64,000 bases of DNA from IMGVR_UViG_3300027573_000779:1-64000; one strand, 5' to 3'. Shown: positions 17,124 through 36,340, numbered from the stretch's first letter. A program made the numbers and translations. Notes: a model not told the origin generated them from the letters alone.

Positions 17124-17199
17124 TGGAACGGTAGACAAGATTCGCACTTGCGTAAAGGTTGGTTGGAAGCCAACTGCCTGACTTCTAGGCTACTACCGC
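17124..17199 (-). tRNA. tRNA-Gly(UCC) with A18 and G55
   Basis: GCGGTAG/CTACCGT acceptor, GTTGG-CTTCCAA-CCAAC anticodon arm, T loop TGCGAAT, U73-CCA. Confidence 0.92.
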
Positions 17200-18413: not shown

Positions 18414-18490
18414 TGGTCCCTCTGGCCGTGGTTGCAACGGCACTGTCAAGCTTTTAAGGCTCGCGTCTCCTGCTCTTGGACTACAGAGGG
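18414..18490 (-). tRNA. tRNA-Leu(UAA) lacking the long variable arm; A18, G55
   Basis: CCCTCTG/CAGAGGG acceptor, CGAGC-CTTAAAA-GCTTG anticodon arm, 5-nt variable loop, GCCGT-TGCAACC-ACGGC T arm, ACCA. Confidence 0.87.
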
Positions 18491-18495
18491 TAAAA

Positions 18496-18570
18496 TGGTG
18501 CGGAAAGGGAGAAGTCGCACTCCCACCTTAAACTTGGCAAGTTCACGTTCTACTACTAAACTACTTCCGC
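18496..18570 (-). tRNA. tRNA-Gly(GCC) with A18, G55, an 8-nt T loop and A73
   Basis: GCGGAAG/TTTCCGC acceptor, TGAAC-TTGCCAA-GTTTA anticodon arm, GGGAG-TGCGACTT-CTCCC T arm. Confidence 0.87.
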
Positions 18571-19100
18571 ATTTTTAAGGCTTGTCTCGCATTTTTAATC
18601 TCTTCTTCAAAATTTTTAATCTCTTCTTCTAAATCCTCAAACTCTTGATGTGCTAAGATATGACATTTCCTGCAAAGAGTCTTTAAATCTTTAACGGTTG
18701 TATCGTAAAGGTTCCTATAAACCAAATGGTGGGGTTCAACCCTAGAAGGAGACCCGCATTTTTCACAAACCGGATTGAGCTTTAACTTCTCTCTTCTCAA
18801 AGCGAACCAATGTTCCGATTTCAGATACTCGGTTCTATAGTATTCCCTTTTATCATTAACGGGATGTTCCCCACGGATTGGGGTATCGTGATAAACGCCC
18901 AGTGAGCGAGGAATCTTAAACTTAGATTTCAGCCTTCTGTTTATCTTCTTGTTGAAGATTCTCATCCCTTCCCAATCAAACCCTCTCTTCTTTTTTCGTT
19001 TTATAACGCCTTTAGGTAACATAAAGTAATGGGATTTTTTCCCTACCTCCGTTGGTAGCACCAATGTCTCCATTGATACCGGCGTCTCCGAACTTCCCAC
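18561..19100 (-). CDS. HNH endonuclease (true start likely MLPKG at ~19022)
   Basis: CEKCG...EPHHLVY...DLKTLCRKCHILAH. Confidence 0.85.
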   Translation of the reverse strand: MGSSETPVSMETLVLPTEVGKKSHYFMLPKGVIKRKKKRGFDWEGMRIFNKKINRRLKSKFKIPRSLGVYHDTPIRGEHPVNDKREYYRTEYLKSEHWFALRREKLKLNPVCEKCGSPSRVEPHHLVYRNLYDTTVKDLKTLCRKCHILAHQEFEDLEEEIKNFEEEIKNARQALKMRK

Positions 19101-19210: not shown

Positions 19211-19245
19211 TAAAAACCCACTCTTTTGAGGGAGTGGGTCTTTTT
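19211..19245 (-). terminator. Intrinsic terminator (possibly bidirectional)
   Basis: ACCCACTC/GAGTGGGT stem flanked by T tracts on both strands. Confidence 0.75.
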
Positions 19246-19413: not shown

Positions 19414-19911
19414 TTACAATTCTTTGCCATCCAACCCCACAAGAGTTGAAACCCTCTTCCAACCATACGTTTTCATCTGTTCTTCATTCATGGTGTCAAG
19501 GCTGGCTTCGGGACTAATCACAAAAATGGAAATATTCTTCTCTCGTATGGTTTTTAGATATTTTTTGACAATAATTTCAAGAGAATAAGCTGATTGTTGA
19601 GCGTATTGAGGGTCGATTCTAAGAACGACCAAGCTGTTAGGTTCAATCTCATCTATCTTGATTATCTTATCTAACTTTAGACCAATTTCAACGTCTGTCT
19701 CTTGTTTAAGCCAACGAATAAATTTATCTTGAACATCCTGTGAGACCCCTTGCCCCTTCATTAATTCTTCGACAGAAGCATATCTTCTCCCGGTAGGTTT
19801 AATTTCTTCTGGATTTTTTAAAGGATGATTATCGTTCAGAGGATTTTCACATCCTACATCGTCATCTTCTGTTGTTCGGCCCATATAAATTCTTTCTTTA
19901 TTATGCTGCAA
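19414..19911 (-). CDS. Hypothetical protein
   Basis: ORF track; follows the PurA-like gene. Confidence 0.6.
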   Translation of the reverse strand: MQHNKERIYMGRTTEDDDVGCENPLNDNHPLKNPEEIKPTGRRYASVEELMKGQGVSQDVQDKFIRWLKQETDVEIGLKLDKIIKIDEIEPNSLVVLRIDPQYAQQSAYSLEIIVKKYLKTIREKNISIFVISPEASLDTMNEEQMKTYGWKRVSTLVGLDGKEL

Positions 19912-21241
19912 CCATCTCTTTTTTCAAGTTTAAAAAAGACATCTTATCGTTTGCCATTTCCCCATAAGATTTAATACCTATAGGGACATTTAACATATCA
20001 GTAAGAATATTAGGAATTGCTTCCCCTTCTACTTTTTCCGATTCACAATTAACTTTACCGAGAGTTTTACCTAGTTCTTCCTGATTAACTAAAAATGACA
20101 TATGGGGTTTTTTAAGTTCCCAAAGTTTTCCATTTAAATTATAGCCAGTGTTAATATACCATGGATTGATTTCATTAATTCTATCACAATGAGAAACCGC
20201 CAAATAATCTACCCCACCGTTAACTTCTAGGGCATATTTTAAAAGGGGAATATCTAACATGCCCGTTCTAAATCTTCCTTGCCATGGACCAGTTGTATTA
20301 GCTGTGTCTTGTAAATTCCAAGGCATTTCAGTTGGAAAAGGTCCTGCGCCGTGTCTGGTGGCATAAATTCTAGTTACACCAATCTCAACAATGTTAGATT
20401 CTAATAACCCCAAGCCAGCTTCATTTAAAACCTTATATACGTTTTCTGTGGTTGTATTACTCCAAGTTGTGTGGGGGTGAAAACCCCATTTTTCATCTAG
20501 TAATATGCCTTGAGCGCCCTCAAAAACAGGATTATTGGAACCTTTTAGCAATTCTGAAACCTGTTGAGCGTCTATGATGTTAATTTTTTTGCTTAATTCC
20601 TGATATTCTTTAGCTATACGGTCAGTAAAACGCAAATCTCTGAAAAACTTAGCATGAGAACCTATAAAATTATAGAAATCAACCCCTTCCCTGTCTAGGC
20701 GCGAAATCATCGCCCTAAAGGTAAGCCAAAGCTTTTCATGGGTAATATCATAATTCTTAAGGTCTTTAACCCGTAAAACATTATCTCTCTTTAAACTGTC
20801 TAAAACTGTTTCTCCAATCCCCACTCCACACGAGCCATGACGATTATTGTTTCTACTCTCTTCTAACATCCTGTTAGCCGCAACATGAAATGGGGTAGTA
20901 ACCAAAGCTCGTTCATCTACATAAATTGATTCAAAGTTTCCCCCTTTGCGCCAAGTATTTGCACTTAAAACCTCTTCTTCTTTTATTAAGGATAAGGGGT
21001 TAAATAAAACGTGCTTAGTGAGTAATGTTTTAACGTTCCGATTGACTAAAGTTCCACTGCCAAACTGAGCAAAAACGTGAGAGTCGCCACTTGAAGTAAC
21101 AACTCTGTGGGCACATTGAGCGCCGCCATTATATCTGATAACTAAATCAGAATTGTTTTGACGGACAAGAAAGTCAACAACACTTCCTTTTGTTTCGTCG
21201 CCGTGTTGCAGACCCACAACTATGAAAACATTTTTGTCCAT
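19901..21241 (-). CDS. Divergent adenylosuccinate synthetase-like protein (start revised to MDKNV)
   Basis: GDETKG, RYNGGAQCAH, FEGAQGILLD, TRHGAGPFPTE, GRFRTG. Confidence 0.9.
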   Translation of the reverse strand: MDKNVFIVVGLQHGDETKGSVVDFLVRQNNSDLVIRYNGGAQCAHRVVTSSGDSHVFAQFGSGTLVNRNVKTLLTKHVLFNPLSLIKEEEVLSANTWRKGGNFESIYVDERALVTTPFHVAANRMLEESRNNNRHGSCGVGIGETVLDSLKRDNVLRVKDLKNYDITHEKLWLTFRAMISRLDREGVDFYNFIGSHAKFFRDLRFTDRIAKEYQELSKKINIIDAQQVSELLKGSNNPVFEGAQGILLDEKWGFHPHTTWSNTTTENVYKVLNEAGLGLLESNIVEIGVTRIYATRHGAGPFPTEMPWNLQDTANTTGPWQGRFRTGMLDIPLLKYALEVNGGVDYLAVSHCDRINEINPWYINTGYNLNGKLWELKKPHMSFLVNQEELGKTLGKVNCESEKVEGEAIPNILTDMLNVPIGIKSYGEMANDKMSFLNLKKEMVAA

Positions 21242-21310
21242 AAATTTGAAAAAAAGGGAGAGGAAAGGCAACCATAACCATTCCTCTCCCGGTGTGCGAA
21301 CCCGAACCAA

Positions 21311-22318
21311 CTAGACTAACTCTACGGAAGAAGCTTTTTTGGATTTCTCCAGTTTACCTTTTACTGTAGCAGTTTTAACAACTGCCGACGAAGGTTTATA
21401 GGCCGAAAGAGCCATACTCGCTCTGTTAATTGCGTCTTTGTCAGCACCAACATCAGCAAGGTCTTTCTTAATGTCATTGATATCATAACCTTCCTCCAAA
21501 CCAATTGTAGAAACAATCAGTTCCACAATATCTTCTGGATTTTTAAGGCGCAAAAGTCTTTGACCAAACATTTTTTTCAAAGGGTCAATAACATTTGAAT
21601 CATTGGTATGTGACGTTTCTGCTGGTATAATCCAGAAAACCTCAAATTTATCACAAAGAGCCTCAAACACTTCGTTTGTTTCAAGATTCTCTTGAAGAGT
21701 GTCACCAATCAGCGTCTTAACTTGCTTCTTATCAACCTGTTCTCTTGGCAATTCGTCGCCAGCAAAGAACAAATATCCCTTCTTGCCGCGCTTATTCACA
21801 CTGTCCAAATCAGTATGATTAGCCATAAAATACATGGCTAGCTCTGCGGATTCATAAATATGCGCACCGCCGCCCCCTTCAAGGTGAATGTGAGCTAGTA
21901 TGTCTGTGTTTTCGCTTCCTGCTTCAAATTGGCCAATTTGGAGAGGAATACTATCGCAAGTTGCGTCTCCATAAGCGCCAAAAAGAATATGAGGGTCAGC
22001 AACATACCCTTTTTTGGTAAGACTGGCCATGAGGTTGTTTAATTTTCCCACAAATTGACGGGGAACACTTGACATTGAGCCGGTTACATCAAAAATAACA
22101 GCAATTGGGAGACTGTTTGGATGAGCGTCACTGTCAAATGACTCACGAATGTTTTTCCCTACCTTGTTAACTTTTGAGGGGTTAAGAAGGTCATGAACCT
22201 TCGAATCAACCGCACCAGAAGCAATATCTGCCGAATATTTAAAATAGTCAGCGCCAGTCCTGCGACAGGTGTCTAAACGGTCAGTATGATAACTATAATC
22301 GTAACTTGAGCTTCCCAT
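21311..22318 (-). CDS. vWA-domain protein
   Basis: IAVIFDVTGSM MIDAS-like motif, EGGGG...YESAEL, FFAGDE. Confidence 0.8.
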   Translation of the reverse strand: MGSSSYDYSYHTDRLDTCRRTGADYFKYSADIASGAVDSKVHDLLNPSKVNKVGKNIRESFDSDAHPNSLPIAVIFDVTGSMSSVPRQFVGKLNNLMASLTKKGYVADPHILFGAYGDATCDSIPLQIGQFEAGSENTDILAHIHLEGGGGAHIYESAELAMYFMANHTDLDSVNKRGKKGYLFFAGDELPREQVDKKQVKTLIGDTLQENLETNEVFEALCDKFEVFWIIPAETSHTNDSNVIDPLKKMFGQRLLRLKNPEDIVELIVSTIGLEEGYDINDIKKDLADVGADKDAINRASMALSAYKPSSAVVKTATVKGKLEKSKKASSVELV

Positions 22319-22352
22319 AAATGTTTTGGTTTGTGAATTATCGTCAATCCCA

Positions 22353-22380
22353 ATCCTACCAAGACTTTTTTAAATGTCAA
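22353..22380 (-). promoter_or_regulatory. Sigma70-type promoter TTGACA-N16-TAGGAT
   Basis: TTGACAtttaaaaaagtcttggTAGGAT upstream of vWA; spacer nearly identical to the one at 5733. Confidence 0.65.
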
Positions 22381-23417
22381 CTCCGGTTCCAAACAAACTT
22401 TCTGAATTTTTTCGGTCCAAAAAGAGCAATCAAAATAGCCTGAAAATCACGATAAAATTCTGTAATGTTTTGTATACGATGAAGATGACTTAGTTGTGCC
22501 GCCTTCATCAAATCCTTAATCGCAGTTGGTAACTTATTGTTGGTCAAATAGTTAAGAATTTTGGACGCCATGTAAATGTCAAACCCAAAATTCAATTCTT
22601 TTTTGTCTTTATATTCAGGGGGATAAAAATCTTTATATTTAGGAACAATTGCTTTTAATTTTGTGCCCTTTTTTCCAGAATAACACCAATCGATAAGCAA
22701 ACCTTCGTGAGTTTCGGGAATTACAAGAACATGAGAAGGAATGATTGCGCCGTGAACATAACCGGAATCATGAGCAGCAATAAGAGCGGATAAAAGTCTA
22801 TTAAACATCCAAGCAGCGTCCCTAACATCAATACCGTCTGGATAGACCCTTTTAATTTCTTCTAAGGAAACGAACTTTGGATTGTAAGGAAAAACATTAG
22901 CCCTTTTAGTGCCGCCATCTTTAATATCTATCCCAAAGAAAGGTTTTAGTATTAACTTAACAATACTGTGCGCTGCAACAGGAGATTTGTAAATTCCATT
23001 TAAAGTATCTAGTTCGGTTTTAAGGAAGACGTTGTGTTTTGGGTCCCGAGACACCTTAACCATAACTTCCTCAGAATTAAAATGGCCCCTATACAAATCG
23101 CAGATGTCCCCATCAGCAAAAATCCCACCAATATCAATATTACCCTTACTAGAAATAATAGTAACGCCGCGACCATCAGTTTCGCGTTTTCCATAAGAAC
23201 CACTCTTAAATTTACACTCAGCTTCCTCTAAAAACTTATTTAATAATATCAGAGCCTCGTGAGCTAAATTCTTATCTGAACATAAATCAGGGTGAGTTTT
23301 TTTTACCCAGTCTCGATAAATTCCTTTTAAATCGCCACTGGTAATATCCCCAAAAATGTCTTCGGCGCAAGTAGCGCTTTGAAGCTGTTTTAAATGCTTT
23401 TTAACGGAAGCAGACAT
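22377..23417 (-). CDS. J-domain-fused Ser/Thr kinase-like protein
   Basis: YRDWVKKTHPD J motif; VMVKVS, LKTE, HGAIIPSHVLV, LIDW kinase-like motifs. Confidence 0.78.
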   Translation of the reverse strand: MSASVKKHLKQLQSATCAEDIFGDITSGDLKGIYRDWVKKTHPDLCSDKNLAHEALILLNKFLEEAECKFKSGSYGKRETDGRGVTIISSKGNIDIGGIFADGDICDLYRGHFNSEEVMVKVSRDPKHNVFLKTELDTLNGIYKSPVAAHSIVKLILKPFFGIDIKDGGTKRANVFPYNPKFVSLEEIKRVYPDGIDVRDAAWMFNRLLSALIAAHDSGYVHGAIIPSHVLVIPETHEGLLIDWCYSGKKGTKLKAIVPKYKDFYPPEYKDKKELNFGFDIYMASKILNYLTNNKLPTAIKDLMKAAQLSHLHRIQNITEFYRDFQAILIALFGPKKFRKFVWNRS

Positions 23418-23613
23418 TAATTTTTTCCATAATAACAGGACATATCAAATTGATATCCTGAGTCGAAAAAAAACTTGGAAATAAGTCTCTAATTTCTTTG
23501 CGTATGTTAGTATCAACGGTATCATCTAAATTGAAATAAATTTCATCTAAAACCTTTTCGTCTAAAATAGAACTAATCCGTTCCCAAACATAATAATAAG
23601 GACTATGTTTCAT
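23401..23613 (-). CDS. Small hypothetical protein, tandem paralog
   Basis: MKHSPYYYVWERISSILDEKVLD resembles 23603-23827. Confidence 0.6.
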   Translation of the reverse strand: MKHSPYYYVWERISSILDEKVLDEIYFNLDDTVDTNIRKEIRDLFPSFFSTQDINLICPVIMEKINVCFR

Positions 23614-23827
23614 TTTCTAAAATATGAATTTCTTCCCTAAGATAAGAATCCATTGAATCGGCATCATCACTCGAAAAATAATCTGGAAACAAGTTGCTAA
23701 TTTTTTTATGAATATCATCATTAACAATATCGATATCGTCCGAGTCAAAAAACTGTCTATCTAAAACCTTTTCGTCTAAAATAGAAGCAATCTGTCCCCA
23801 AACATAAAAAATAGGACTACGTTTCAT
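23603..23827 (-). CDS. Small hypothetical protein, tandem paralog
   Basis: MKRSPIFYVWGQIASILDEKVLD. Confidence 0.6.
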   Translation of the reverse strand: MKRSPIFYVWGQIASILDEKVLDRQFFDSDDIDIVNDDIHKKISNLFPDYFSSDDADSMDSYLREEIHILENET

Positions 23828-27228: not shown

Positions 27229-27882
27229 TTATAATTGATGAAGAAGTCCTCCGGGTCTTTGTTGCCCCTTTATAGTCTTCATGATTTGTTTATCTATCAT
27301 ATCACCAAGAAGAAGCTCTTTTGCTTTTCTTTTTAAATATTTTCTTCTTTGTTTTGTCGCTTCATACAATACTATACCCGTAGAAGTGCCTAAATTCAAG
27401 CTTTCAATTATCCCACACATGGGAATATTAATGCAACACTCACTGTTATCTATTGCGGCCTGACTAACACCCTGACTTTCGTTGCCGAACCAAATTGCCA
27501 GTTTCTTATGAGTGTAATCCCCTTCCTCTAAAATAACATTCTTTTTACCCTTAAGGTGTGGAGAGGTCACCATTGATACAAACCCTTTACTATTAAGATA
27601 TTTTATACATGAATCGGTGTCGGGATAACACTTAACAAAAGCCCATTTAATAGCAGAAACAGAAATTTTGTTTAAAGAGCCTGTTTCTCTCATTGTCTGC
27701 CAATATGCAGGTAAAAGTCTATACCCATCAACGACATATAGTTTTTGAACTCCTAGAGCGTCAATGTTACGGACCACTGAGCCGATGTTTTCAATCGTCT
27801 TGGGATTTTCCAAAACGGCAATTAAGTTCTTACAGCGTAATTGCTTTGCTCTATCAGCTTTCAGACGAAGATTGGTCTTCAT
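27229..27882 (-). CDS. SpoU/TrmH-family RNA 2'-O-methyltransferase
   Basis: VLENPKTIENIGSVVR (motif 1), FGNESQG (motif 2), IPMCGIIESLN (motif 3). Confidence 0.9.
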   Translation of the reverse strand: MKTNLRLKADRAKQLRCKNLIAVLENPKTIENIGSVVRNIDALGVQKLYVVDGYRLLPAYWQTMRETGSLNKISVSAIKWAFVKCYPDTDSCIKYLNSKGFVSMVTSPHLKGKKNVILEEGDYTHKKLAIWFGNESQGVSQAAIDNSECCINIPMCGIIESLNLGTSTGIVLYEATKQRRKYLKRKAKELLLGDMIDKQIMKTIKGQQRPGGLLHQL

Positions 27883-28097
27883 TTCTTTTTTCCTTTTAAA
27901 ATCACCTTGCTACCGTATCTTTCGAACAAAAACTGCACAAAAGGAATTAAGAGTATCGGCCCCAAAAATCCAGCGAAAAACCCTCCAAATAATTCCTCAA
28001 GTAGAAGGTCTTCTCCATCTAAGTAATGAAGATAAGTGAAGAAAACAATAAGCGCCCAACCACATAAAACCCACCCAATAATAATGTAAAATATCAT
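27879..28097 (-). CDS. Small two-TM protein, family member 2
   Basis: GP motif and basic C-terminus. Confidence 0.65.
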   Translation of the reverse strand: MIFYIIIGWVLCGWALIVFFTYLHYLDGEDLLLEELFGGFFAGFLGPILLIPFVQFLFERYGSKVILKGKKK

Positions 28098-28316
28098 TTA
28101 TTTTTTTCTCCGAAAAATTACTTTGTCATCCAGTCTTATTGACAAACTCATAAATAGAATAATAACCGCAAACGGCCCCATAAAAGAAAACCCACAGGCA
28201 ATCAAAATATCGCCAAGAGTTATTTCGTCGTTTTCCAAGTATTCGGATGCGACTATCAAAGCACAACCTATGCTGCACCAAACAAACACAACAAATATAA
28301 TACCAAGAGTTGCCAT
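28098..28316 (-). CDS. Small two-TM protein, family member 3
   Basis: EITLGDI...GP...DKVIFRRKK. Confidence 0.65.
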   Translation of the reverse strand: MATLGIIFVVFVWCSIGCALIVASEYLENDEITLGDILIACGFSFMGPFAVIILFMSLSIRLDDKVIFRRKK

Positions 28317-28338
28317 AAATTAACTGTAAGACGGGAGT

Positions 28339-28560
28339 TTAGTCGTTGTTTTGCTTTTTTCCTTTAATTATAACTATGTCATCCTCTTCAATTAAGAAGA
28401 ACGCAAGCCAAACCACTAAAACAATAGGACCTAAAACACCGAACAATAAACTATTAATTATTTTTTGTAATGTTATATCAAAACCCTGTATATAATCTTT
28501 ATAAATAAATAAAACTAAAGGAATCCAACCTACTAAGAACCATCCTATAACGTATATCAT
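28339..28560 (-). CDS. Small two-TM protein, family member 4
   Basis: DITLQKI...GP...DIVIIKGKK. Confidence 0.65.
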   Translation of the reverse strand: MIYVIGWFLVGWIPLVLFIYKDYIQGFDITLQKIINSLLFGVLGPIVLVVWLAFFLIEEDDIVIIKGKKQNND

Positions 28561-28775
28561 ATTTCACCTTTCCAACAAATCTTATTTGCGCGTTCAGCAG
28601 CTTTCTTTTTTGAAATATCTTCTTGTATTTTTTTCATACACTTTTTCGCATCTTCTTCCCTTCTCAACGTGCAAAACCCATAGGTCCACGTGTCAAAATC
28701 GTGCCACATTCCAAACTCACGAAACTGAGGAAGATAAACTTCCCGATAAACGTCGTAAAAGATTCTTACTTTCAT
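28557..28775 (-). CDS. Hypothetical protein
   Basis: ORF track. Confidence 0.55.
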   Translation of the reverse strand: MKVRIFYDVYREVYLPQFREFGMWHDFDTWTYGFCTLRREEDAKKCMKKIQEDISKKKAAERANKICWKGEI

Positions 28776-29869
28776 ACCGCGACCTCTCCTTTTATAGCTG
28801 GATGTGGGTCGTAGCCCTCTAACCTAATATCCTCATACTTGAAATCAAAAAGGTCTCGCTTATCGGGGTTGAGCCATAAGCGGGGTAAAGGTTTAGGCTC
28901 GCGGCTTAGTTGCTCATTTACCTGCTCTTTATGATTCTCATAAATATGCAAATCTCCATAGGTATGAATGAAAGTTCCCGGCTGCATATTAACACAATGG
29001 GCGACCATTGCTAATAGGAGACTATAAGATGTGATGTTGAATGGCACGCCTAGGAAAGTATCACAGCTTCTTTGATAGAGTAGAAGATTAAGACGGCGAC
29101 TTGGAACACCCATTCTATTTAAAGCCTCTTCTTGCTCTTGAATAGTATGGTAACCTACTTGGCCCCACGAGCCTTCTTTTTGTTTGTAAGTGGGGTTTTT
29201 AAAAGATAGCTCAAATCTTTCGTCGTGTGTTAGTTCCTCAGTATGAAACTGAAACAAGCAATGGCACGGCGGCAGCGCACATTTCTCGACCCAATAAGGA
29301 TGCCATGCACTTACTATCATGCGGCGGTCATCGGGGTTAGTCTTGAGTTTGTCGAGGACTTTCTGGAGTTGGTCTACCTCTCCCTTCAGTCCTTGTTCAA
29401 CACAATTCTCATAAAAATATGGAAATGCTCGCCACATCCCACCATAAGTTCCTTCGCCTAATTCTCCATGCTCGGCAGCAAATTTTTCGTCATTCTTTAT
29501 TCTCTCTAAGAACTTATCCATAGATAAAGCTCTTCCGTGTTCGTCGCCATCCCATTTAAAAATACCAGTAAGAGTTGGAAACTTTTCAGCATACCTCTTA
29601 TAGGGCCAAGAATTCCAAATATGAACGTCATTATCCACCAAATACTTAATGTTGGTATCTCCCCGTATGAACCATAACAGTTCGTGAACAACGCCTTTAA
29701 ACCACACCTTCTTAGTTGTTAATATAGGAAACTCCTCAAAACTAACAGGAAACTTCGCCTGCTCCCCAAACACTCCTACAGTATTTATCCCCGTCCGGTT
29801 CTTCTTAACCGTTCCCTTTTCCAGAATAGTATTTAAAAGTCTAAAATATTCCTTGTCAGTATTATTCAT
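28772..29869 (-). CDS. thyA: Thymidylate synthase
   Basis: ALPPCHCLFQF, YQRSCDTFLGVPFN, YGDLHIYENH. Confidence 0.96.
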   Translation of the reverse strand: MNNTDKEYFRLLNTILEKGTVKKNRTGINTVGVFGEQAKFPVSFEEFPILTTKKVWFKGVVHELLWFIRGDTNIKYLVDNDVHIWNSWPYKRYAEKFPTLTGIFKWDGDEHGRALSMDKFLERIKNDEKFAAEHGELGEGTYGGMWRAFPYFYENCVEQGLKGEVDQLQKVLDKLKTNPDDRRMIVSAWHPYWVEKCALPPCHCLFQFHTEELTHDERFELSFKNPTYKQKEGSWGQVGYHTIQEQEEALNRMGVPSRRLNLLLYQRSCDTFLGVPFNITSYSLLLAMVAHCVNMQPGTFIHTYGDLHIYENHKEQVNEQLSREPKPLPRLWLNPDKRDLFDFKYEDIRLEGYDPHPAIKGEVAV

Positions 29870-30608
29870 ATTCTGGAATCATCGTAAGTAATTGTTCGTT
29901 TTTTTTAAAATCCCAAGCGCCTTTGGCGACTAATTGTCCTCTTTCATCTTCCGCGCCCGAAAATTCCCTATAAACAATTCGGCCATTTTTTTGACCGTCA
30001 CTTAAATCTCTTGCCCAATTAATACCTATTTCATGTAACATTTCGTGCATATCTGATTGACTTTTCTTATGTAATTGATTAGGTAAAAAATAATATTGTG
30101 CCAACATTGAAATTGAATTTCTAACACAGTCCTGCTGCCGCCACCTAAAATAGTTCATCACTTCAATCCGGTCAGGAATGGTAAAGACGCGACAATCAAA
30201 ATATGCTTGAGTTTGGTCATACCACTGATTTTTTTCATTAAACTGTCTATAAATTCTTCGTTTGTTAAACTCTGCGGTCATTATACTAGCCGCCACAGAA
30301 GTTATCTTTTGTATATTTCCATCAAACCAAGCACAAGAATCGATATTTTCAAAATCAGTCACCAAAATACTTATTTCGTCTGACTGATTATAAGCAAAAA
30401 CCACACCCTGAATATTAGGAAATAAAGCTAATGTAGCCTCATCCAAATCATTCATTAGCCCGTTATCAAAAGGTTTCAGTAACCCTCTGGTATAGGTATG
30501 AAAAGCTTTCCCATCTAAACGAAGGATAGTATAAGTGCGCCGAGGAAGACTGTAACGAGTTCTGTCTTCGTACTGCTCCTTCATCCTTTGACCGAACAAA
30601 TCATTCAT
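29862..30608 (-). CDS. Thg1-like tRNA(His) guanylyltransferase / 3'-5' polymerase (TLP)
   Basis: ILRLDGKAFH, YNQSDEIS, FDCRVF, RQQDCVRNS. Confidence 0.92.
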   Translation of the reverse strand: MNDLFGQRMKEQYEDRTRYSLPRRTYTILRLDGKAFHTYTRGLLKPFDNGLMNDLDEATLALFPNIQGVVFAYNQSDEISILVTDFENIDSCAWFDGNIQKITSVAASIMTAEFNKRRIYRQFNEKNQWYDQTQAYFDCRVFTIPDRIEVMNYFRWRQQDCVRNSISMLAQYYFLPNQLHKKSQSDMHEMLHEIGINWARDLSDGQKNGRIVYREFSGAEDERGQLVAKGAWDFKKNEQLLTMIPEYE

Positions 30609-35490: not shown

Positions 35491-36018
35491 CTAAACTATT
35501 CGATGTGTACTCCCAAATCCACCCAACCCTCTATCACTTTCTGTAAGTTGTTGAACTTCAACGAAATCCACATCAAAATATTTTTTGAATACTATTTGAG
35601 CGATTGGGTCTCCGGGTTTTATTTCAAGAGTGTCCTGACTGCCAAATATGTTTTCCTGTGCCCAAAGAGTTTTGAACTCTTCAATTGCCTGAATGCCAAT
35701 TAATAATTTTTTAATCGTTTCAAATCCATTCAAGTTAATTAAGACAACGCCAATGTTATCTCTGTAACCAGAATCAATAACTCCAGCCATCACATCAATC
35801 CCCTTTTTTAAGGCGAGTCCGCTTTTAGGTCTTATCATTGCGACAAAACCTTCAGGGAACTCAAACCTCAATCCAATAGGAATCAATTTCCTTTCAAAGG
35901 GTGCAAGTTTAAAATATTCAGGACTGAATAAATCATAACCTGCATCCCCTTGTTTGGCCTTTTTAGGAATGATGGCTTTAGAATTAGTTTTGATGAATTT
36001 GACTTGAAAATCACTCAT
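35491..36018 (-). CDS. dut: dUTPase (trimeric type)
   Basis: GDAGYDL, RPKSG, GVIDSGYR, RGLGGFGST. Confidence 0.95.
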   Translation of the reverse strand: MSDFQVKFIKTNSKAIIPKKAKQGDAGYDLFSPEYFKLAPFERKLIPIGLRFEFPEGFVAMIRPKSGLALKKGIDVMAGVIDSGYRDNIGVVLINLNGFETIKKLLIGIQAIEEFKTLWAQENIFGSQDTLEIKPGDPIAQIVFKKYFDVDFVEVQQLTESDRGLGGFGSTHRIV

Positions 36019-36340
36019 TAACGCAAATGGTTTCTACTGAAGGACTTATATCAATTGATTCAGTCTTTTTATAAATTCTGCTCGGACAGCCGCCAGAAGG
36101 TCTCGTTTTTTCAAGCCTTATCAATGTCCCTTCTTCAACAGCCTTATTAACTTTAAGCTGAATTGACACTGCACTTAGACTTTTGTTTTCGGCGTTTAGT
36201 GAGCTTTCAATATCTTTAACTGAGAATTCTGAAGTGGGCCACTCAATATGAGTTTTCTTGCGGCCAGTTTTTTTATTAATTTTTAAACTATTGTTCATAT
36301 CTTTCAACAGAGCATAAGAAACCCTTGAGTTCTTTGTCAA
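36011..36340 (-). CDS. Winged-helix-like DNA-binding protein
   Basis: FSVKDI...LSAVSIQLKVNKAVEEG...GCPSRIY. Confidence 0.55.
   Translation of the reverse strand: MTKNSRVSYALLKDMNNSLKINKKTGRKKTHIEWPTSEFSVKDIESSLNAENKSLSAVSIQLKVNKAVEEGTLIRLEKTRPSGGCPSRIYKKTESIDISPSVETICVNE

Follow-up and report, generated by a model that had tools for sequence, protein, structure and literature searches.

The window analysed here, the first 64 kb (64,000 nucleotides) of a 208.9-kb jumbo phage (IMGVR_UViG_3300027573_000779), contains three co-oriented genes on the minus strand. They encode a J-domain protein with a predicted kinase fold, a protein with a predicted vWA fold and a divergent member of the PurA (adenylosuccinate synthetase) family. 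The features of the locus, in the order of transcription, are as follows.

22377-23417, minus strand: gene 1 (346 aa), a J-domain (about residues 1-72, HPD motif at 23286-23294) fused to a protein-kinase fold; the catalytic loop reads VHGAIIPSH (22731-22757) and lacks the catalytic Asp, and the DFG position reads DWC (22683-22691).
21311-22318, minus strand: gene 2 (335 aa), a vWA-fold protein with a putative MIDAS motif (DVTGS at 22076-22090, GDE at 21752-21760), a nearly invariant N-terminal Met-Gly and a disordered C-terminal tail.
21249-21290, minus strand: a terminator-like hairpin (10-bp G+C-rich stem, -25.8 kcal/mol, z -3.4) followed by U7, between the vWA stop codon and the ATG of the PurA-like gene; possibly an attenuator that sets the ratio of the two products.
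19901-21241, minus strand: gene 3, the divergent PurA-family enzyme, with the kept motifs GDETKG (21185-21202), GGAQCAH (21107-21127), FEGAQG (20507-20524) and SHCD (20183-20194) and the changed motifs HGSCG (20825-20839), HTTWS (20459-20473), TRHG (20348-20359) and GPWQGRFRTGM (20258-20290).
19414-19911, minus strand: a downstream ORF of 165 aa that overlaps the stop of the PurA-like gene by 11 nt, has no family match and is not conserved next to the cassette elsewhere; it is probably co-transcribed but not part of the conserved module.
19212-19243: a bidirectional terminator-like hairpin that would end the transcription unit.

The frame of gene 3 is open up to a TTG at 21310 (469 aa), but the ATG at 21241 is the likely true start, because homologues align from about residue 26. 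The initial annotation had described three co-oriented genes for a J-domain kinase, a vWA protein and a PurA-like protein that keeps the catalytic Asp and His but has an altered aspartate-binding loop, and this observation is confirmed. The PurA-like protein matches PF00709 at 4.7e-62, Asp13 and His41 are kept, and where the E. coli enzyme has GATTGRRRRTGW it reads GPWQGRFRTGM. The statement that PurZ has Ser at the Asp13 position also holds for PurZ of phiVC8.

The arrangement is not due to chance. Among 80 IMG/VR loci found through the vWA profile, 78 have the PurA-like gene just downstream of the vWA gene and 71 have the kinase-like gene, in the same order and on the same strand. The three genes also recur in about 200 cluster C mycobacteriophages and in most of 80 bacterial loci, where they form a single-copy accessory operon in Actinomycetota, Chloroflexota and Planctomycetota, including soil bacteria. 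Hence, the claim that equivalent operons exist in bacteria is correct. No other gene is conserved in the bacterial flanks. Five bacterial genomes contain both a canonical purA (566-610 bits) and the cassette copy (174-205 bits).

The PurA-like proteins form a clade of their own (SH-aLRT 100, branch length 0.79), apart from PurA and PurZ, although PurZ was represented by a single row on a long branch and its exact position is unsure. Phage and bacterial members are repeatedly intermixed within the tree, with at least 4-5 forced changes. The protein from the window scores far below the curated cut-offs for PurA (170.7 bits against 402 for NF002223 and 162.7 against 395.6 for TIGR00184) and for PurZ (61.6 bits against 300 for NF038379).

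We compared substrate-binding residues in 153 cassette-linked PurA-like sequences. Asp13 (149/149), His41 (149/149), Gln224 (151), the guanine-specifying Asp333 (150) and Lys16 are kept. In contrast, the aspartate site, which in PurA comprises Val273, Thr300, Thr301, Arg303 and Arg305, shows V273H in 152/152, T300W in 125, T301Q in 147, a deletion of R303 in 153/153 and R305F in 115; the window carries these same five changes. Of the ligands of the IMP 5'-phosphate (Asn38, Thr129, Thr239 and Arg143 of the other subunit), only Thr239 is kept across the clade, since N38Q occurs in 148 and T129C in 127 sequences and R143 is kept in only 8 of 153, although the window itself has Arg at this position. 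Ribose ligands are changed as well, and K331 is replaced by H/C. Ligand roles were taken from the H. pylori enzyme, in which IMP binds the equivalents of D13, N38, G127, T129, T239, V273, R303 and R143 and a sulfate at the aspartate site binds the equivalents of R303 and R305 (PMC11571797); the aspartate-site assignment also follows the E. coli enzyme.

The AlphaFold model of the first protein (pLDDT 94.3) has a helical N-terminal domain, and its best PDB match is the DnaJ-PKA chimera 4wb7. The HPD tripeptide (residues 42-44) is kept in 59-61 of 72 relatives, but the PF00226 score of 14.6 bits is below the gathering score of 27.8; a relative reaches 23.1. Foldseek matches Aurora, Pim1, PknB and VRK at E about 1e-11, and the beta3 Lys (K121) and the alphaC Glu (E135) are each present in 56/72 relatives. 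The position of the catalytic-loop Asp (HRD), however, is occupied by Ala in 50, Gly in 16, Asn in 3, Ser in 3 and Asp in 0 of 72 sequences, and the loop Asn is replaced by His in 51 and Thr in 12 and retained in 5. The DFG Asp is found in 42/72 and in the window. Consequently, the protein looks like a pseudokinase or an enzyme with other chemistry.

The second protein has no Pfam hit, but its model (pLDDT 86.5) matches integrin I-domains, RGLG1 and NorD vWA domains with a Foldseek probability of 1.00. Over 164 sequences D77, T79, S81 and D188 are at least 90% conserved, while the middle Thr of the MIDAS motif could not be assigned without coordinates. Met1-Gly2 is likewise kept in at least 90% of these sequences, which is unusual for an N-terminus. 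In some mycobacteriophage copies an intein sits 5 residues before the MIDAS Asp. A complex prediction for the vWA and PurA-like proteins gave no verdict (score 0.00) and thus does not show a physical association.

Relatives of the cassette provide a context of ADP-ribose and NAD. An NrtR-like gene lies upstream in 52/80 bacterial and 7/80 phage loci; regulators of the NrtR type sense ADP-ribose (PMC9503650). A palindromic operator is enriched upstream of the cassette (22/59 against 0/58 in controls), and the same operator lies about 45 bp upstream of PARG genes in 5 genomes. This link to PARG comes from one bacterial family, and several of the sites are orthologous. Some PurA-like proteins are fused to a NUDIX domain with an intact Nudix box, and in some phages (one locus and its relatives) NadV and NadM/NUDIX lie between the cassette genes. 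NadV is common in large phages anyway (PMC9503650), so this adjacency may reflect metabolic gene islands. The phage studied here has no NrtR, NUDIX, NAMPT, NadV, NadM, PARG-linked operator, Hsp70 or PurB. The link to NAD and ADP-ribose therefore holds for the family, not for this copy, and is borrowed from relatives.

The interpretation in the initial annotation, that the enzyme ligates a different amine or nucleotide and possibly makes a signalling or modified nucleotide under kinase control, is partly supported. Remodelling of the aspartate pocket extends to all 153 cassette-linked PurA-like proteins while the phosphotransfer residues and the GTP site are kept, so that a different nucleophile is the natural inference, and the enzyme is neither PurA nor PurZ by tree and by curated cut-offs. 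Kinase control is not supported, because the catalytic Asp is absent from 72 of 72 relatives. The jumbo-phage origin, the changes at the 5'-phosphate and ribose ligands and the ADP-ribose/NAD context had not been recognized.

We propose that the three genes are one copy of a self-contained cassette that moves between large phages and bacteria. The analysis establishes a third clade of the adenylosuccinate-synthetase superfamily, which keeps the GTP site and the residues that transfer the gamma-phosphate to O6 of a hypoxanthine nucleotide, but has lost every side chain that holds L-aspartate and two of the four ligands of the 5'-phosphate. Everything beyond this is inferred; no biochemical data exist for any member, and a literature search found no paper on the cassette. 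Presumably, the enzyme still performs a GTP-driven activation of an oxygen followed by displacement by a nitrogen nucleophile other than aspartate. The new pocket (His273, Trp300, Gln301, Phe305, Trp240) suits a small or aromatic/hydrophobic amine, and the nucleotide may carry something other than a free 5'-phosphate. Because bacterial copies are headed by an NrtR-type ADP-ribose-sensing repressor that also controls PARG, are sometimes fused to an active-looking NUDIX domain, and in some phages are interleaved with NadV/NadM, the product, probably a nucleotide, most likely serves adenine-nucleotide/NAD homeostasis when NAD is being broken down to ADP-ribose. In this view the vWA protein is a Mg-dependent peptide clamp and the pseudokinase a nucleotide-binding scaffold that brings in Hsp70, which must be the host DnaK since the phage encodes none; both would be non-catalytic partners that together assemble, hold or release the enzyme. 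The phage would use the cassette to keep these pools, or a nucleotide derived from them, available during infection. Nothing, however, explains why a metabolic enzyme needs a vWA protein and a J-domain pseudokinase. That the enzyme is neither PurA nor PurZ is highly probable, and that its nucleophile is not aspartate is likely; that it is still a GTP-dependent ligase is somewhat more likely than not, whereas a functional link to ADP-ribose/NAD is about as likely as not. The explanation as a whole remains tentative.

A conflict system is the strongest alternative, although we consider it unlikely. The cassette would then be an immune, exclusion or counter-defence module, in which the vWA protein and the pseudokinase sense a protein state such as DnaK availability or ADP-ribosylated proteins, and the PurA-like enzyme drains GTP/IMP or makes a toxic or signalling N6-substituted purine nucleotide. 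This would agree with the patchy, single-copy distribution (28 of 81 species in one actinobacterial family), the unrelated bacterial flanks, the intermixing of phage and bacterial members and weak hits of the kinase fold to the defence kinases MkoA and PD-T4-6. Moreover, control by an ADP-ribose sensor together with PARG resembles the Nudix-TF/vWA systems proposed to counter viral ADP-ribosylation (PMC9503650, section 3.8). However, PADLOC has no match for the vWA or the PurA-like protein, the bacterial neighbours are ordinary housekeeping genes rather than defence islands, no toxic effector domain is recognisable, and lytic phages keep the cassette next to genes of nucleotide and NAD metabolism. 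It is still less likely that the enzyme joins the activated purine nucleotide to an amine of a protein, with the N-terminal glycine (free after Met removal) or a lysine of the vWA neighbour as the likeliest target. The strict adjacency of the two genes, the conserved Met-Gly, the intein, which marks the vWA protein as functionally constrained, and the change of the aspartate pocket into an aromatic, uncharged channel (W, W, F, H, Q) of the kind that admits an aliphatic amine would suit such an adduct, but no precedent is known in the PurA family, the complex prediction gave no verdict, and a conserved Met-Gly may reflect expression or stability only.

Equally doubtful is a regulatory GTPase without ligase chemistry, working with the vWA protein as MoxR ATPases work with theirs. 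PurA is a SIMIBI-class P-loop protein, vWA proteins commonly pair with NTPases, as in the NorD/NorQ matches, and the substrate-binding residues are heavily altered; yet Asp13, His41 and Gln224, which act on the purine substrate rather than on GTP, are invariant in about 150 sequences, which would not be expected for a mere switch. An ordinary auxiliary purA that boosts AMP synthesis from IMP and aspartate, with the host PurB finishing the reaction, is also very unlikely. The PF00709 match, the kept catalytic Asp and His, nearby nucleotide-metabolism genes (thymidylate synthase and, in relatives, ribonucleotide reductase) and the annotation of these proteins as adenylosuccinate synthetase in public records favor it, but the replaced or deleted aspartate ligands, the low score, the normal purA in bacteria with the cassette and the unexplained obligatory linkage to a vWA protein do not. 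A PurZ-type enzyme for a 2-aminoadenine (Z) genome is implied by the best PHROG, phrog_1211, labelled '2-aminooxy adenylosuccinate synthetase', and by the RefSeq annotations of the mycobacteriophage homologues; RefSeq uses that name for the phage I3 homologue. This reading is all but excluded by Asp at position 13 in 149/149 sequences, where all phage PurZ have Ser (PMC12884076), by the score and separate clade, by the absence of a PurZ structure among the PDB sequence hits and by the lack of any PF01966 (HD, DatZ) or PF03819 (MazG) match in the complete phage.

Among known systems, PurA (EC 6.3.4.4) shares the fold, the P-loop with the catalytic Asp, the catalytic His, Gln224 and the guanine-specifying Asp in the T-x-x-D motif, and probably the two-step chemistry in which GTP phosphorylates an oxygen and an amine then displaces the phosphate. 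The cassette enzyme differs in the residues listed above, scores under half the curated cut-off, is always a second copy in bacteria and is always encoded next to a vWA gene. PurZ (N6-succino-2-amino-2'-deoxyadenylate synthase) is likewise a phage-borne offshoot of the superfamily with altered substrate choice and falls in the same PHROG, but it still uses aspartate and travels with DatZ, MazZ and DpoZ. With the NrtR regulon and phage NAD salvage (NadV plus NadM-Nudix, 'NARP2'), relatives of the cassette share the Nudix-winged-helix regulator and the interleaved genes, and the PurA-like-NUDIX fusion mirrors NadM-Nudix; however, no cassette protein is homologous to a known NAD-synthesis enzyme, and the regulator scores below the NCBIfam equivalog cut-off (117-155 bits against 400). 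The predicted Nudix-TF/vWA/ADP-ribosylglycohydrolase systems (Iyer et al. 2022, PMC9503650) also combine an ADP-ribose-sensing Nudix regulator, a vWA 'peptide-binding chaperone' and an ADP-ribose-removing enzyme, here a co-regulated PARG, but they center on ARG and phosphatase domains, and none is described with a PurA-like enzyme or a J-domain kinase fold. In the TerY-P triad (vWA TerY, Ser/Thr kinase, PP2C phosphatase) and in MoxR-vWA pairs, a vWA protein encoded next to a kinase-fold protein or an NTPase is reportedly thought to act as a Mg-dependent adaptor (Anantharaman et al. 2012). The present cassette has no phosphatase and no AAA+ ATPase, its kinase fold lacks the catalytic Asp and carries a J-domain, and its third partner is a PurA-family enzyme.

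The IMG/VR virus record, of which the window is the first 64 kb, comprises 208,933 bp and is rated complete. It is a jumbo phage of about 35-40% G+C with tRNA genes and long co-directional gene blocks. The three genes of interest lie head to tail on the minus strand and, together with the flanking elements, are arranged as follows.

23603-23827 and 23401-23613 (minus): two tandem, overlapping small ORFs (74 and 70 aa, respectively) with clearly related sequences, both starting MK-x-SP-x-x-YVW ... SILDEKVLD, directly upstream of the J-domain gene; the ORF at 23401-23613 overlaps its start codon
22377-23417 (minus): P0001, 346 aa, predicted J-domain plus kinase fold
21311-22318 (minus): P0002, 335 aa, predicted vWA protein
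21249-21290 (minus): 10-bp G+C-rich hairpin followed by seven U (-25.8 kcal/mol, z -3.4), between the vWA stop and the PurA-like ATG
19901-21310 (minus): P0003, 469 aa from a TTG, PurA-like protein
19212-19243: bidirectional terminator-like hairpin that closes the unit

Homologues align to P0003 only from about residue 26, and an ATG at 21241 (MDKNV...) is therefore the likely start. The hairpin at 21249-21290 is strong and lies inside what otherwise looks like one operon; it may be a partial terminator or attenuator. A consensus scan missed it because its loop exceeds 8 nt. A 165-aa ORF of unknown function overlaps the PurA-like stop by 11 nt. None of the genes has a Shine-Dalgarno sequence.

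Elsewhere in the window a tRNA-centred neighbourhood was found, with a Thg1-like tRNA-His guanylyltransferase (29862-30608) and a SpoU-type RNA methylase (27229-27882) within 27229-30608 on the minus strand, and four tRNA genes at 2905-2981, 17124-17199, 18414-18490 and 18496-18570. An HNH endonuclease ORF (18561-19100) overlaps the end of tRNA-Gly(gcc). The thymidylate synthase (28772-29869, minus) has 365 aa, yet it covers the whole 266-position Pfam model and must therefore carry about 100 extra residues inside the domain; PHROG matches split at about residue 258. The cumulative GC skew reaches its minimum near 36 kb, where gene orientation switches from minus (ORF 36011-36340) to plus (36389 onward). 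This is a divergent transcription point, or possibly a replication-related switch.

P0003 matches PF00709 at 4.7e-62. Its best solved relatives are genuine adenylosuccinate synthetases (3hid, 1.4e-31), and no PurZ structure reaches E 0.001. P0002 has no Pfam, NCBIfam or PADLOC match, but 3,802 database relatives, many of them on contigs of 200-390 kb. Its AlphaFold model (pLDDT 86.5, pTM 0.87) matches integrin I-domains and the vWA domains of RGLG1 and NorD. D77-x-T79-x-S81, the G-D188-E motif and the N-terminal Met-Gly are each at least 90% conserved over 164 sequences. PADLOC also gave no hit for the PurA-like protein, and Atlas entries added nothing beyond 'vWA' and 'adenylosuccinate synthetase'.

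The model of P0001 (pLDDT 94.3) has as its best PDB match the human DnaJ-PKA chimera 4wb7, followed by Aurora, Pim1, PknB and VRK kinases. The architecture is therefore as described in the initial annotation, and its observation of a three-gene module with a divergent PurA-like protein was confirmed. The HPD motif is present in 59-61 of 72 relatives. The catalytic loop, however, reads V-H-G-A-I-I-P-S-H, and at the position of the HRD aspartate the family has Ala (50), Gly (16), Asn (3) or Ser (3) and never Asp. The loop Asn is mostly His, the DFG Asp survives in 42 of 72, and the beta3 Lys and alphaC Glu are kept in 56 of 72. This is the profile of a pseudokinase that may still bind nucleotide rather than of a working Ser/Thr kinase.

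A nucleotide search of the phage collection with the region returned nothing. Translated searches, in contrast, find all three genes in the same order in about 200 cluster C mycobacteriophages (Bxz1, I3), and the vWA plus PurA-like pair also in Vibrio phage Va1 and in Rhizobium phages. A search for related loci with the single vWA protein confirmed none, whereas a scan of IMG/VR with a vWA profile returned 80 loci. Of these, 78 have a PurA-like gene downstream on the same strand. Of the two exceptions, locus L058 ends at the contig edge, and in locus L009 no such gene lies within the roughly 2.9 kb that follow. The kinase-like gene is present in 71 of the 80 loci, and no other neighbour is shared by more than 10 loci. 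In some cluster C mycobacteriophages (locus L179, Mycobacterium phage Yassified, OR613471, 1501-3282; also hits H41, H63-H68, H72 and H74 of a translated search) the vWA gene is one 593-aa CDS annotated 'HNH endonuclease'. It carries an in-frame insertion of about 254 aa that begins with Cys and ends with Ser-Asn followed by Cys, placed 5 residues before the MIDAS Asp of the GDE motif. This is an intein in a conserved functional site.

The same profile scan of one genome per bacterial species gave at least 540 hits. The best 80 come from Actinomycetota (Actinoplanes, Nocardiopsis, Kitasatospora, Frankia), Chloroflexota and Planctomycetota, and most again show kinase-like, vWA and PurA-like genes in that order, with unrelated, ordinary genes in the flanks. 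In one actinobacterial family, 28 of 81 species carry exactly one copy. The closest relative of the window's cassette (locus L087) lies on a 203,076-bp contig binned as a Cellvibrionaceae MAG (CAZIWB010000009.1), which by its size and content is probably a related jumbo phage rather than bacterial DNA; it carries a NAMPT gene upstream of the cassette. In two loci from Planctomycetota (L088 and L095) the vWA homologue occurs without a detectable PurA-like or kinase-like neighbour, so the vWA family is not strictly confined to the cassette. The neighbours of these two genes (a WD40 protein and an aminotransferase) gave no lead.

Five bacterial genomes with the cassette each also have a canonical purA, with 566-610 bits against 174-205 bits for the cassette copy. 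In a maximum-likelihood tree the cassette-linked proteins form one clade (SH-aLRT 100, stem length 0.79), apart from seven canonical PurA and from phiVC8 PurZ, which is the only PurZ included and has a long branch. Phage and bacterial rows are interleaved in this tree. P0003 scores 170.7 bits against the PurA equivalog cut-off of 402 and 61.6 bits against the PurZ cut-off of 300. The phage has no HD (DatZ) or MazG gene.

To examine the active site, 153 cassette-linked sequences were aligned to E. coli PurA. Gly12, Asp13, Lys16 and Gly17 (149/149 each), His41 (149/149), Gln224 (151), Thr239 (149), Arg272, Arg306, Asp311, Asp333 (150) and the Ser414-x-Gly-Pro motif are kept. Other positions have changed to new, conserved residues, namely N38Q (148), I126H (145), T128S (135), T129C (127), R131 to Met/Val/Leu, S240W (127), V273H (152/152), T300W (125), T301Q (147), R305F (115) and K331H/C (142), and R303 is deleted (153/153). 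Arg143, which reaches in from the other subunit, is kept in only 8. The ligand roles are taken from the H. pylori enzyme, in which IMP is held by the equivalents of D13, N38, G127, T129, T239, V273, R303 and R143*, and a sulfate in the aspartate site is held by the equivalents of R303 and R305 (PMC11571797). It follows, from the alignment alone, that the phosphotransfer machinery and guanine recognition survive, while the whole carboxylate-binding site has become an uncharged aromatic pocket and the grip on the ribose 2'-OH and the 5'-phosphate is altered. The remodelled aspartate loop pointed out in the initial annotation is one element of this clade-wide signature. A His/Cys metal site formed by H126, C129, H273 and H/C331 was considered as well, but was dropped since in PurA these positions lie in three different subsites.

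A link to ADP-ribose and NAD emerged from the relatives. One MAG locus had a NUDIX/NrtR winged-helix gene where the kinase-like gene usually sits. A search with this gene showed an NrtR-family gene directly upstream of the kinase-like gene, on the same strand, in 52 of 80 bacterial loci and 7 of 80 phage loci. Clustering of the bacterial flanks had not revealed it, because longer antisense ORFs in the high-G+C DNA masked the gene; ORF calling in high-G+C loci was crude. Its best NCBIfam match is the ADP-ribose-responsive repressor, below cut-off, and NrtR-type regulators sense ADP-ribose (PMC9503650). A palindrome, TGTTCTC-N5-GAGAACA, lies upstream of this gene with at most 2 mismatches in 22 of 59 loci, against 0 of 58 control regions. 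The phage NrtR-like genes of loci L055, L056 and L058 are preceded at position -37 from their start by a palindrome (ACTGTGT-N7-ACACAGT) different from the actinobacterial operator, which suggests a diverged operator specificity.

An exact-match pattern of the operator found nothing. With redefined half-sites, 151 Streptomycetaceae genomes were scanned and 33 sites examined. Eleven are at the cassette, and five, in five genomes, lie about 45 bp upstream of a microbial-type PARG gene (PF10021). The PARG link comes from this one bacterial family, and several of the sites are orthologous, so they are not five independent events. Most of the remaining sites have G+C-rich spacers and match the control rate; three further operator-like sites, next to an integrase, a DusB-like gene and an unknown gene, are regarded as unresolved or noise. 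In Kitasatospora and some Streptomyces the PurA-like protein is fused to a C-terminal NUDIX domain with an intact Nudix box, and there are ten database clusters of such fusions. The same NUDIX type stands alone inside the cassette in phage loci L024 and L065. In locus L042 the order is NrtR, vWA, NadM/NUDIX, NAMPT, PurA-like, kinase-like, with overlapping genes, and five other loci also carry NAMPT. The phage studied here has none of NrtR, NUDIX, NAMPT, PurB or Hsp70, and for this copy the link is by homology only.

Taken together, it is very likely that the enzyme is a third functional branch of the PurA superfamily, and not an auxiliary purA or a PurZ. It is likely that it still couples GTP to activation of an oxygen and displacement by a nitrogen nucleophile other than aspartate, since residues that act on the acceptor, not on GTP, are invariant. 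The separate clade and its residue signature are direct results of the sequence comparison, whereas the reaction and the roles of the partner proteins are inferred without experimental data. The interpretation in the initial annotation was thus partly supported: a different nucleophile is likely, but kinase control is not supported by the pseudokinase profile. Candidates for acceptor and nucleophile are IMP with ammonia or a hydrophobic amine, a hypoxanthine nucleotide with a substituted 5'-phosphate, an ADP-ribose-type acceptor with nicotinamide, and a protein amine. The regulatory and fusion evidence points to NAD/ADP-ribose turnover as the physiological setting. From domain knowledge, we read the vWA protein and the J-domain pseudokinase as non-catalytic partners that would tether or gate the enzyme and connect it to host DnaK. 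A complex prediction for the vWA and PurA-like proteins scored 0.00, which is no evidence either way. Literature searches for the triad, for PurA-like proteins with vWA or kinase, and for NrtR with adenylosuccinate found no description.

The main rival is a conflict system, in which the cassette would act in immunity or counter-immunity with the enzyme as effector; this is not excluded by the patchy distribution and the exchange between phages and bacteria. A more far-reaching possibility, which we consider improbable, is that PurA chemistry is applied to an ADP-ribose-type substrate instead of IMP. GTP would phosphorylate the anomeric hydroxyl of ADP-ribose, and nicotinamide, held in the new aromatic pocket (Trp, Trp, Phe, His, Gln), would displace the phosphate, which would rebuild NAD+ in one step from the two products of NADase attack. 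This would fit induction by an ADP-ribose sensor, co-regulation with PARG, which releases ADP-ribose, the NadM-like fusion to NUDIX, the position among NadV/NadM genes in some phages and the loss of the 5'-phosphate clamp. However, it does not explain the invariant Asp13/Gln224 pair any better than a hypoxanthine substrate does, and it explains neither the vWA protein nor the J-domain partner.

The regulatory tie to ADP-ribose sensing and PARG, seen in relatives, would place the reaction in NAD depletion and ADP-ribosylation, currently the most active area of phage-host conflict. The J-domain fused to an apparently dead kinase fold would be a rare bacterial and phage example of a pseudokinase coupled to Hsp70. 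In public records the bacterial copies, including the NUDIX fusions, are named plain adenylosuccinate synthetase. RefSeq names the mycobacteriophage homologues (phage I3, NC_067270, gene 273, and other cluster C records) '2-aminooxy adenylosuccinate synthetase', the PurZ label of phrog_1211, although they keep Asp13 and lack the aspartate site; GenBank calls the same genes 'PurA-like'. These look like annotation errors that propagate. A 2026 survey found 481 PF00709 proteins in phages, of which 147 are PurZ, all with Ser13, and left the rest, about 330, undiscussed (PMC12884076). The cassette accounts for a large share of these, including those of the roughly 200 genetically tractable cluster C mycobacteriophages, and for thousands of metagenomic and actinobacterial genes. 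The PurA superfamily has already yielded one surprise, the Z genome, and a third functional branch besides PurA and PurZ would add a new nucleotide-ligation reaction to it.
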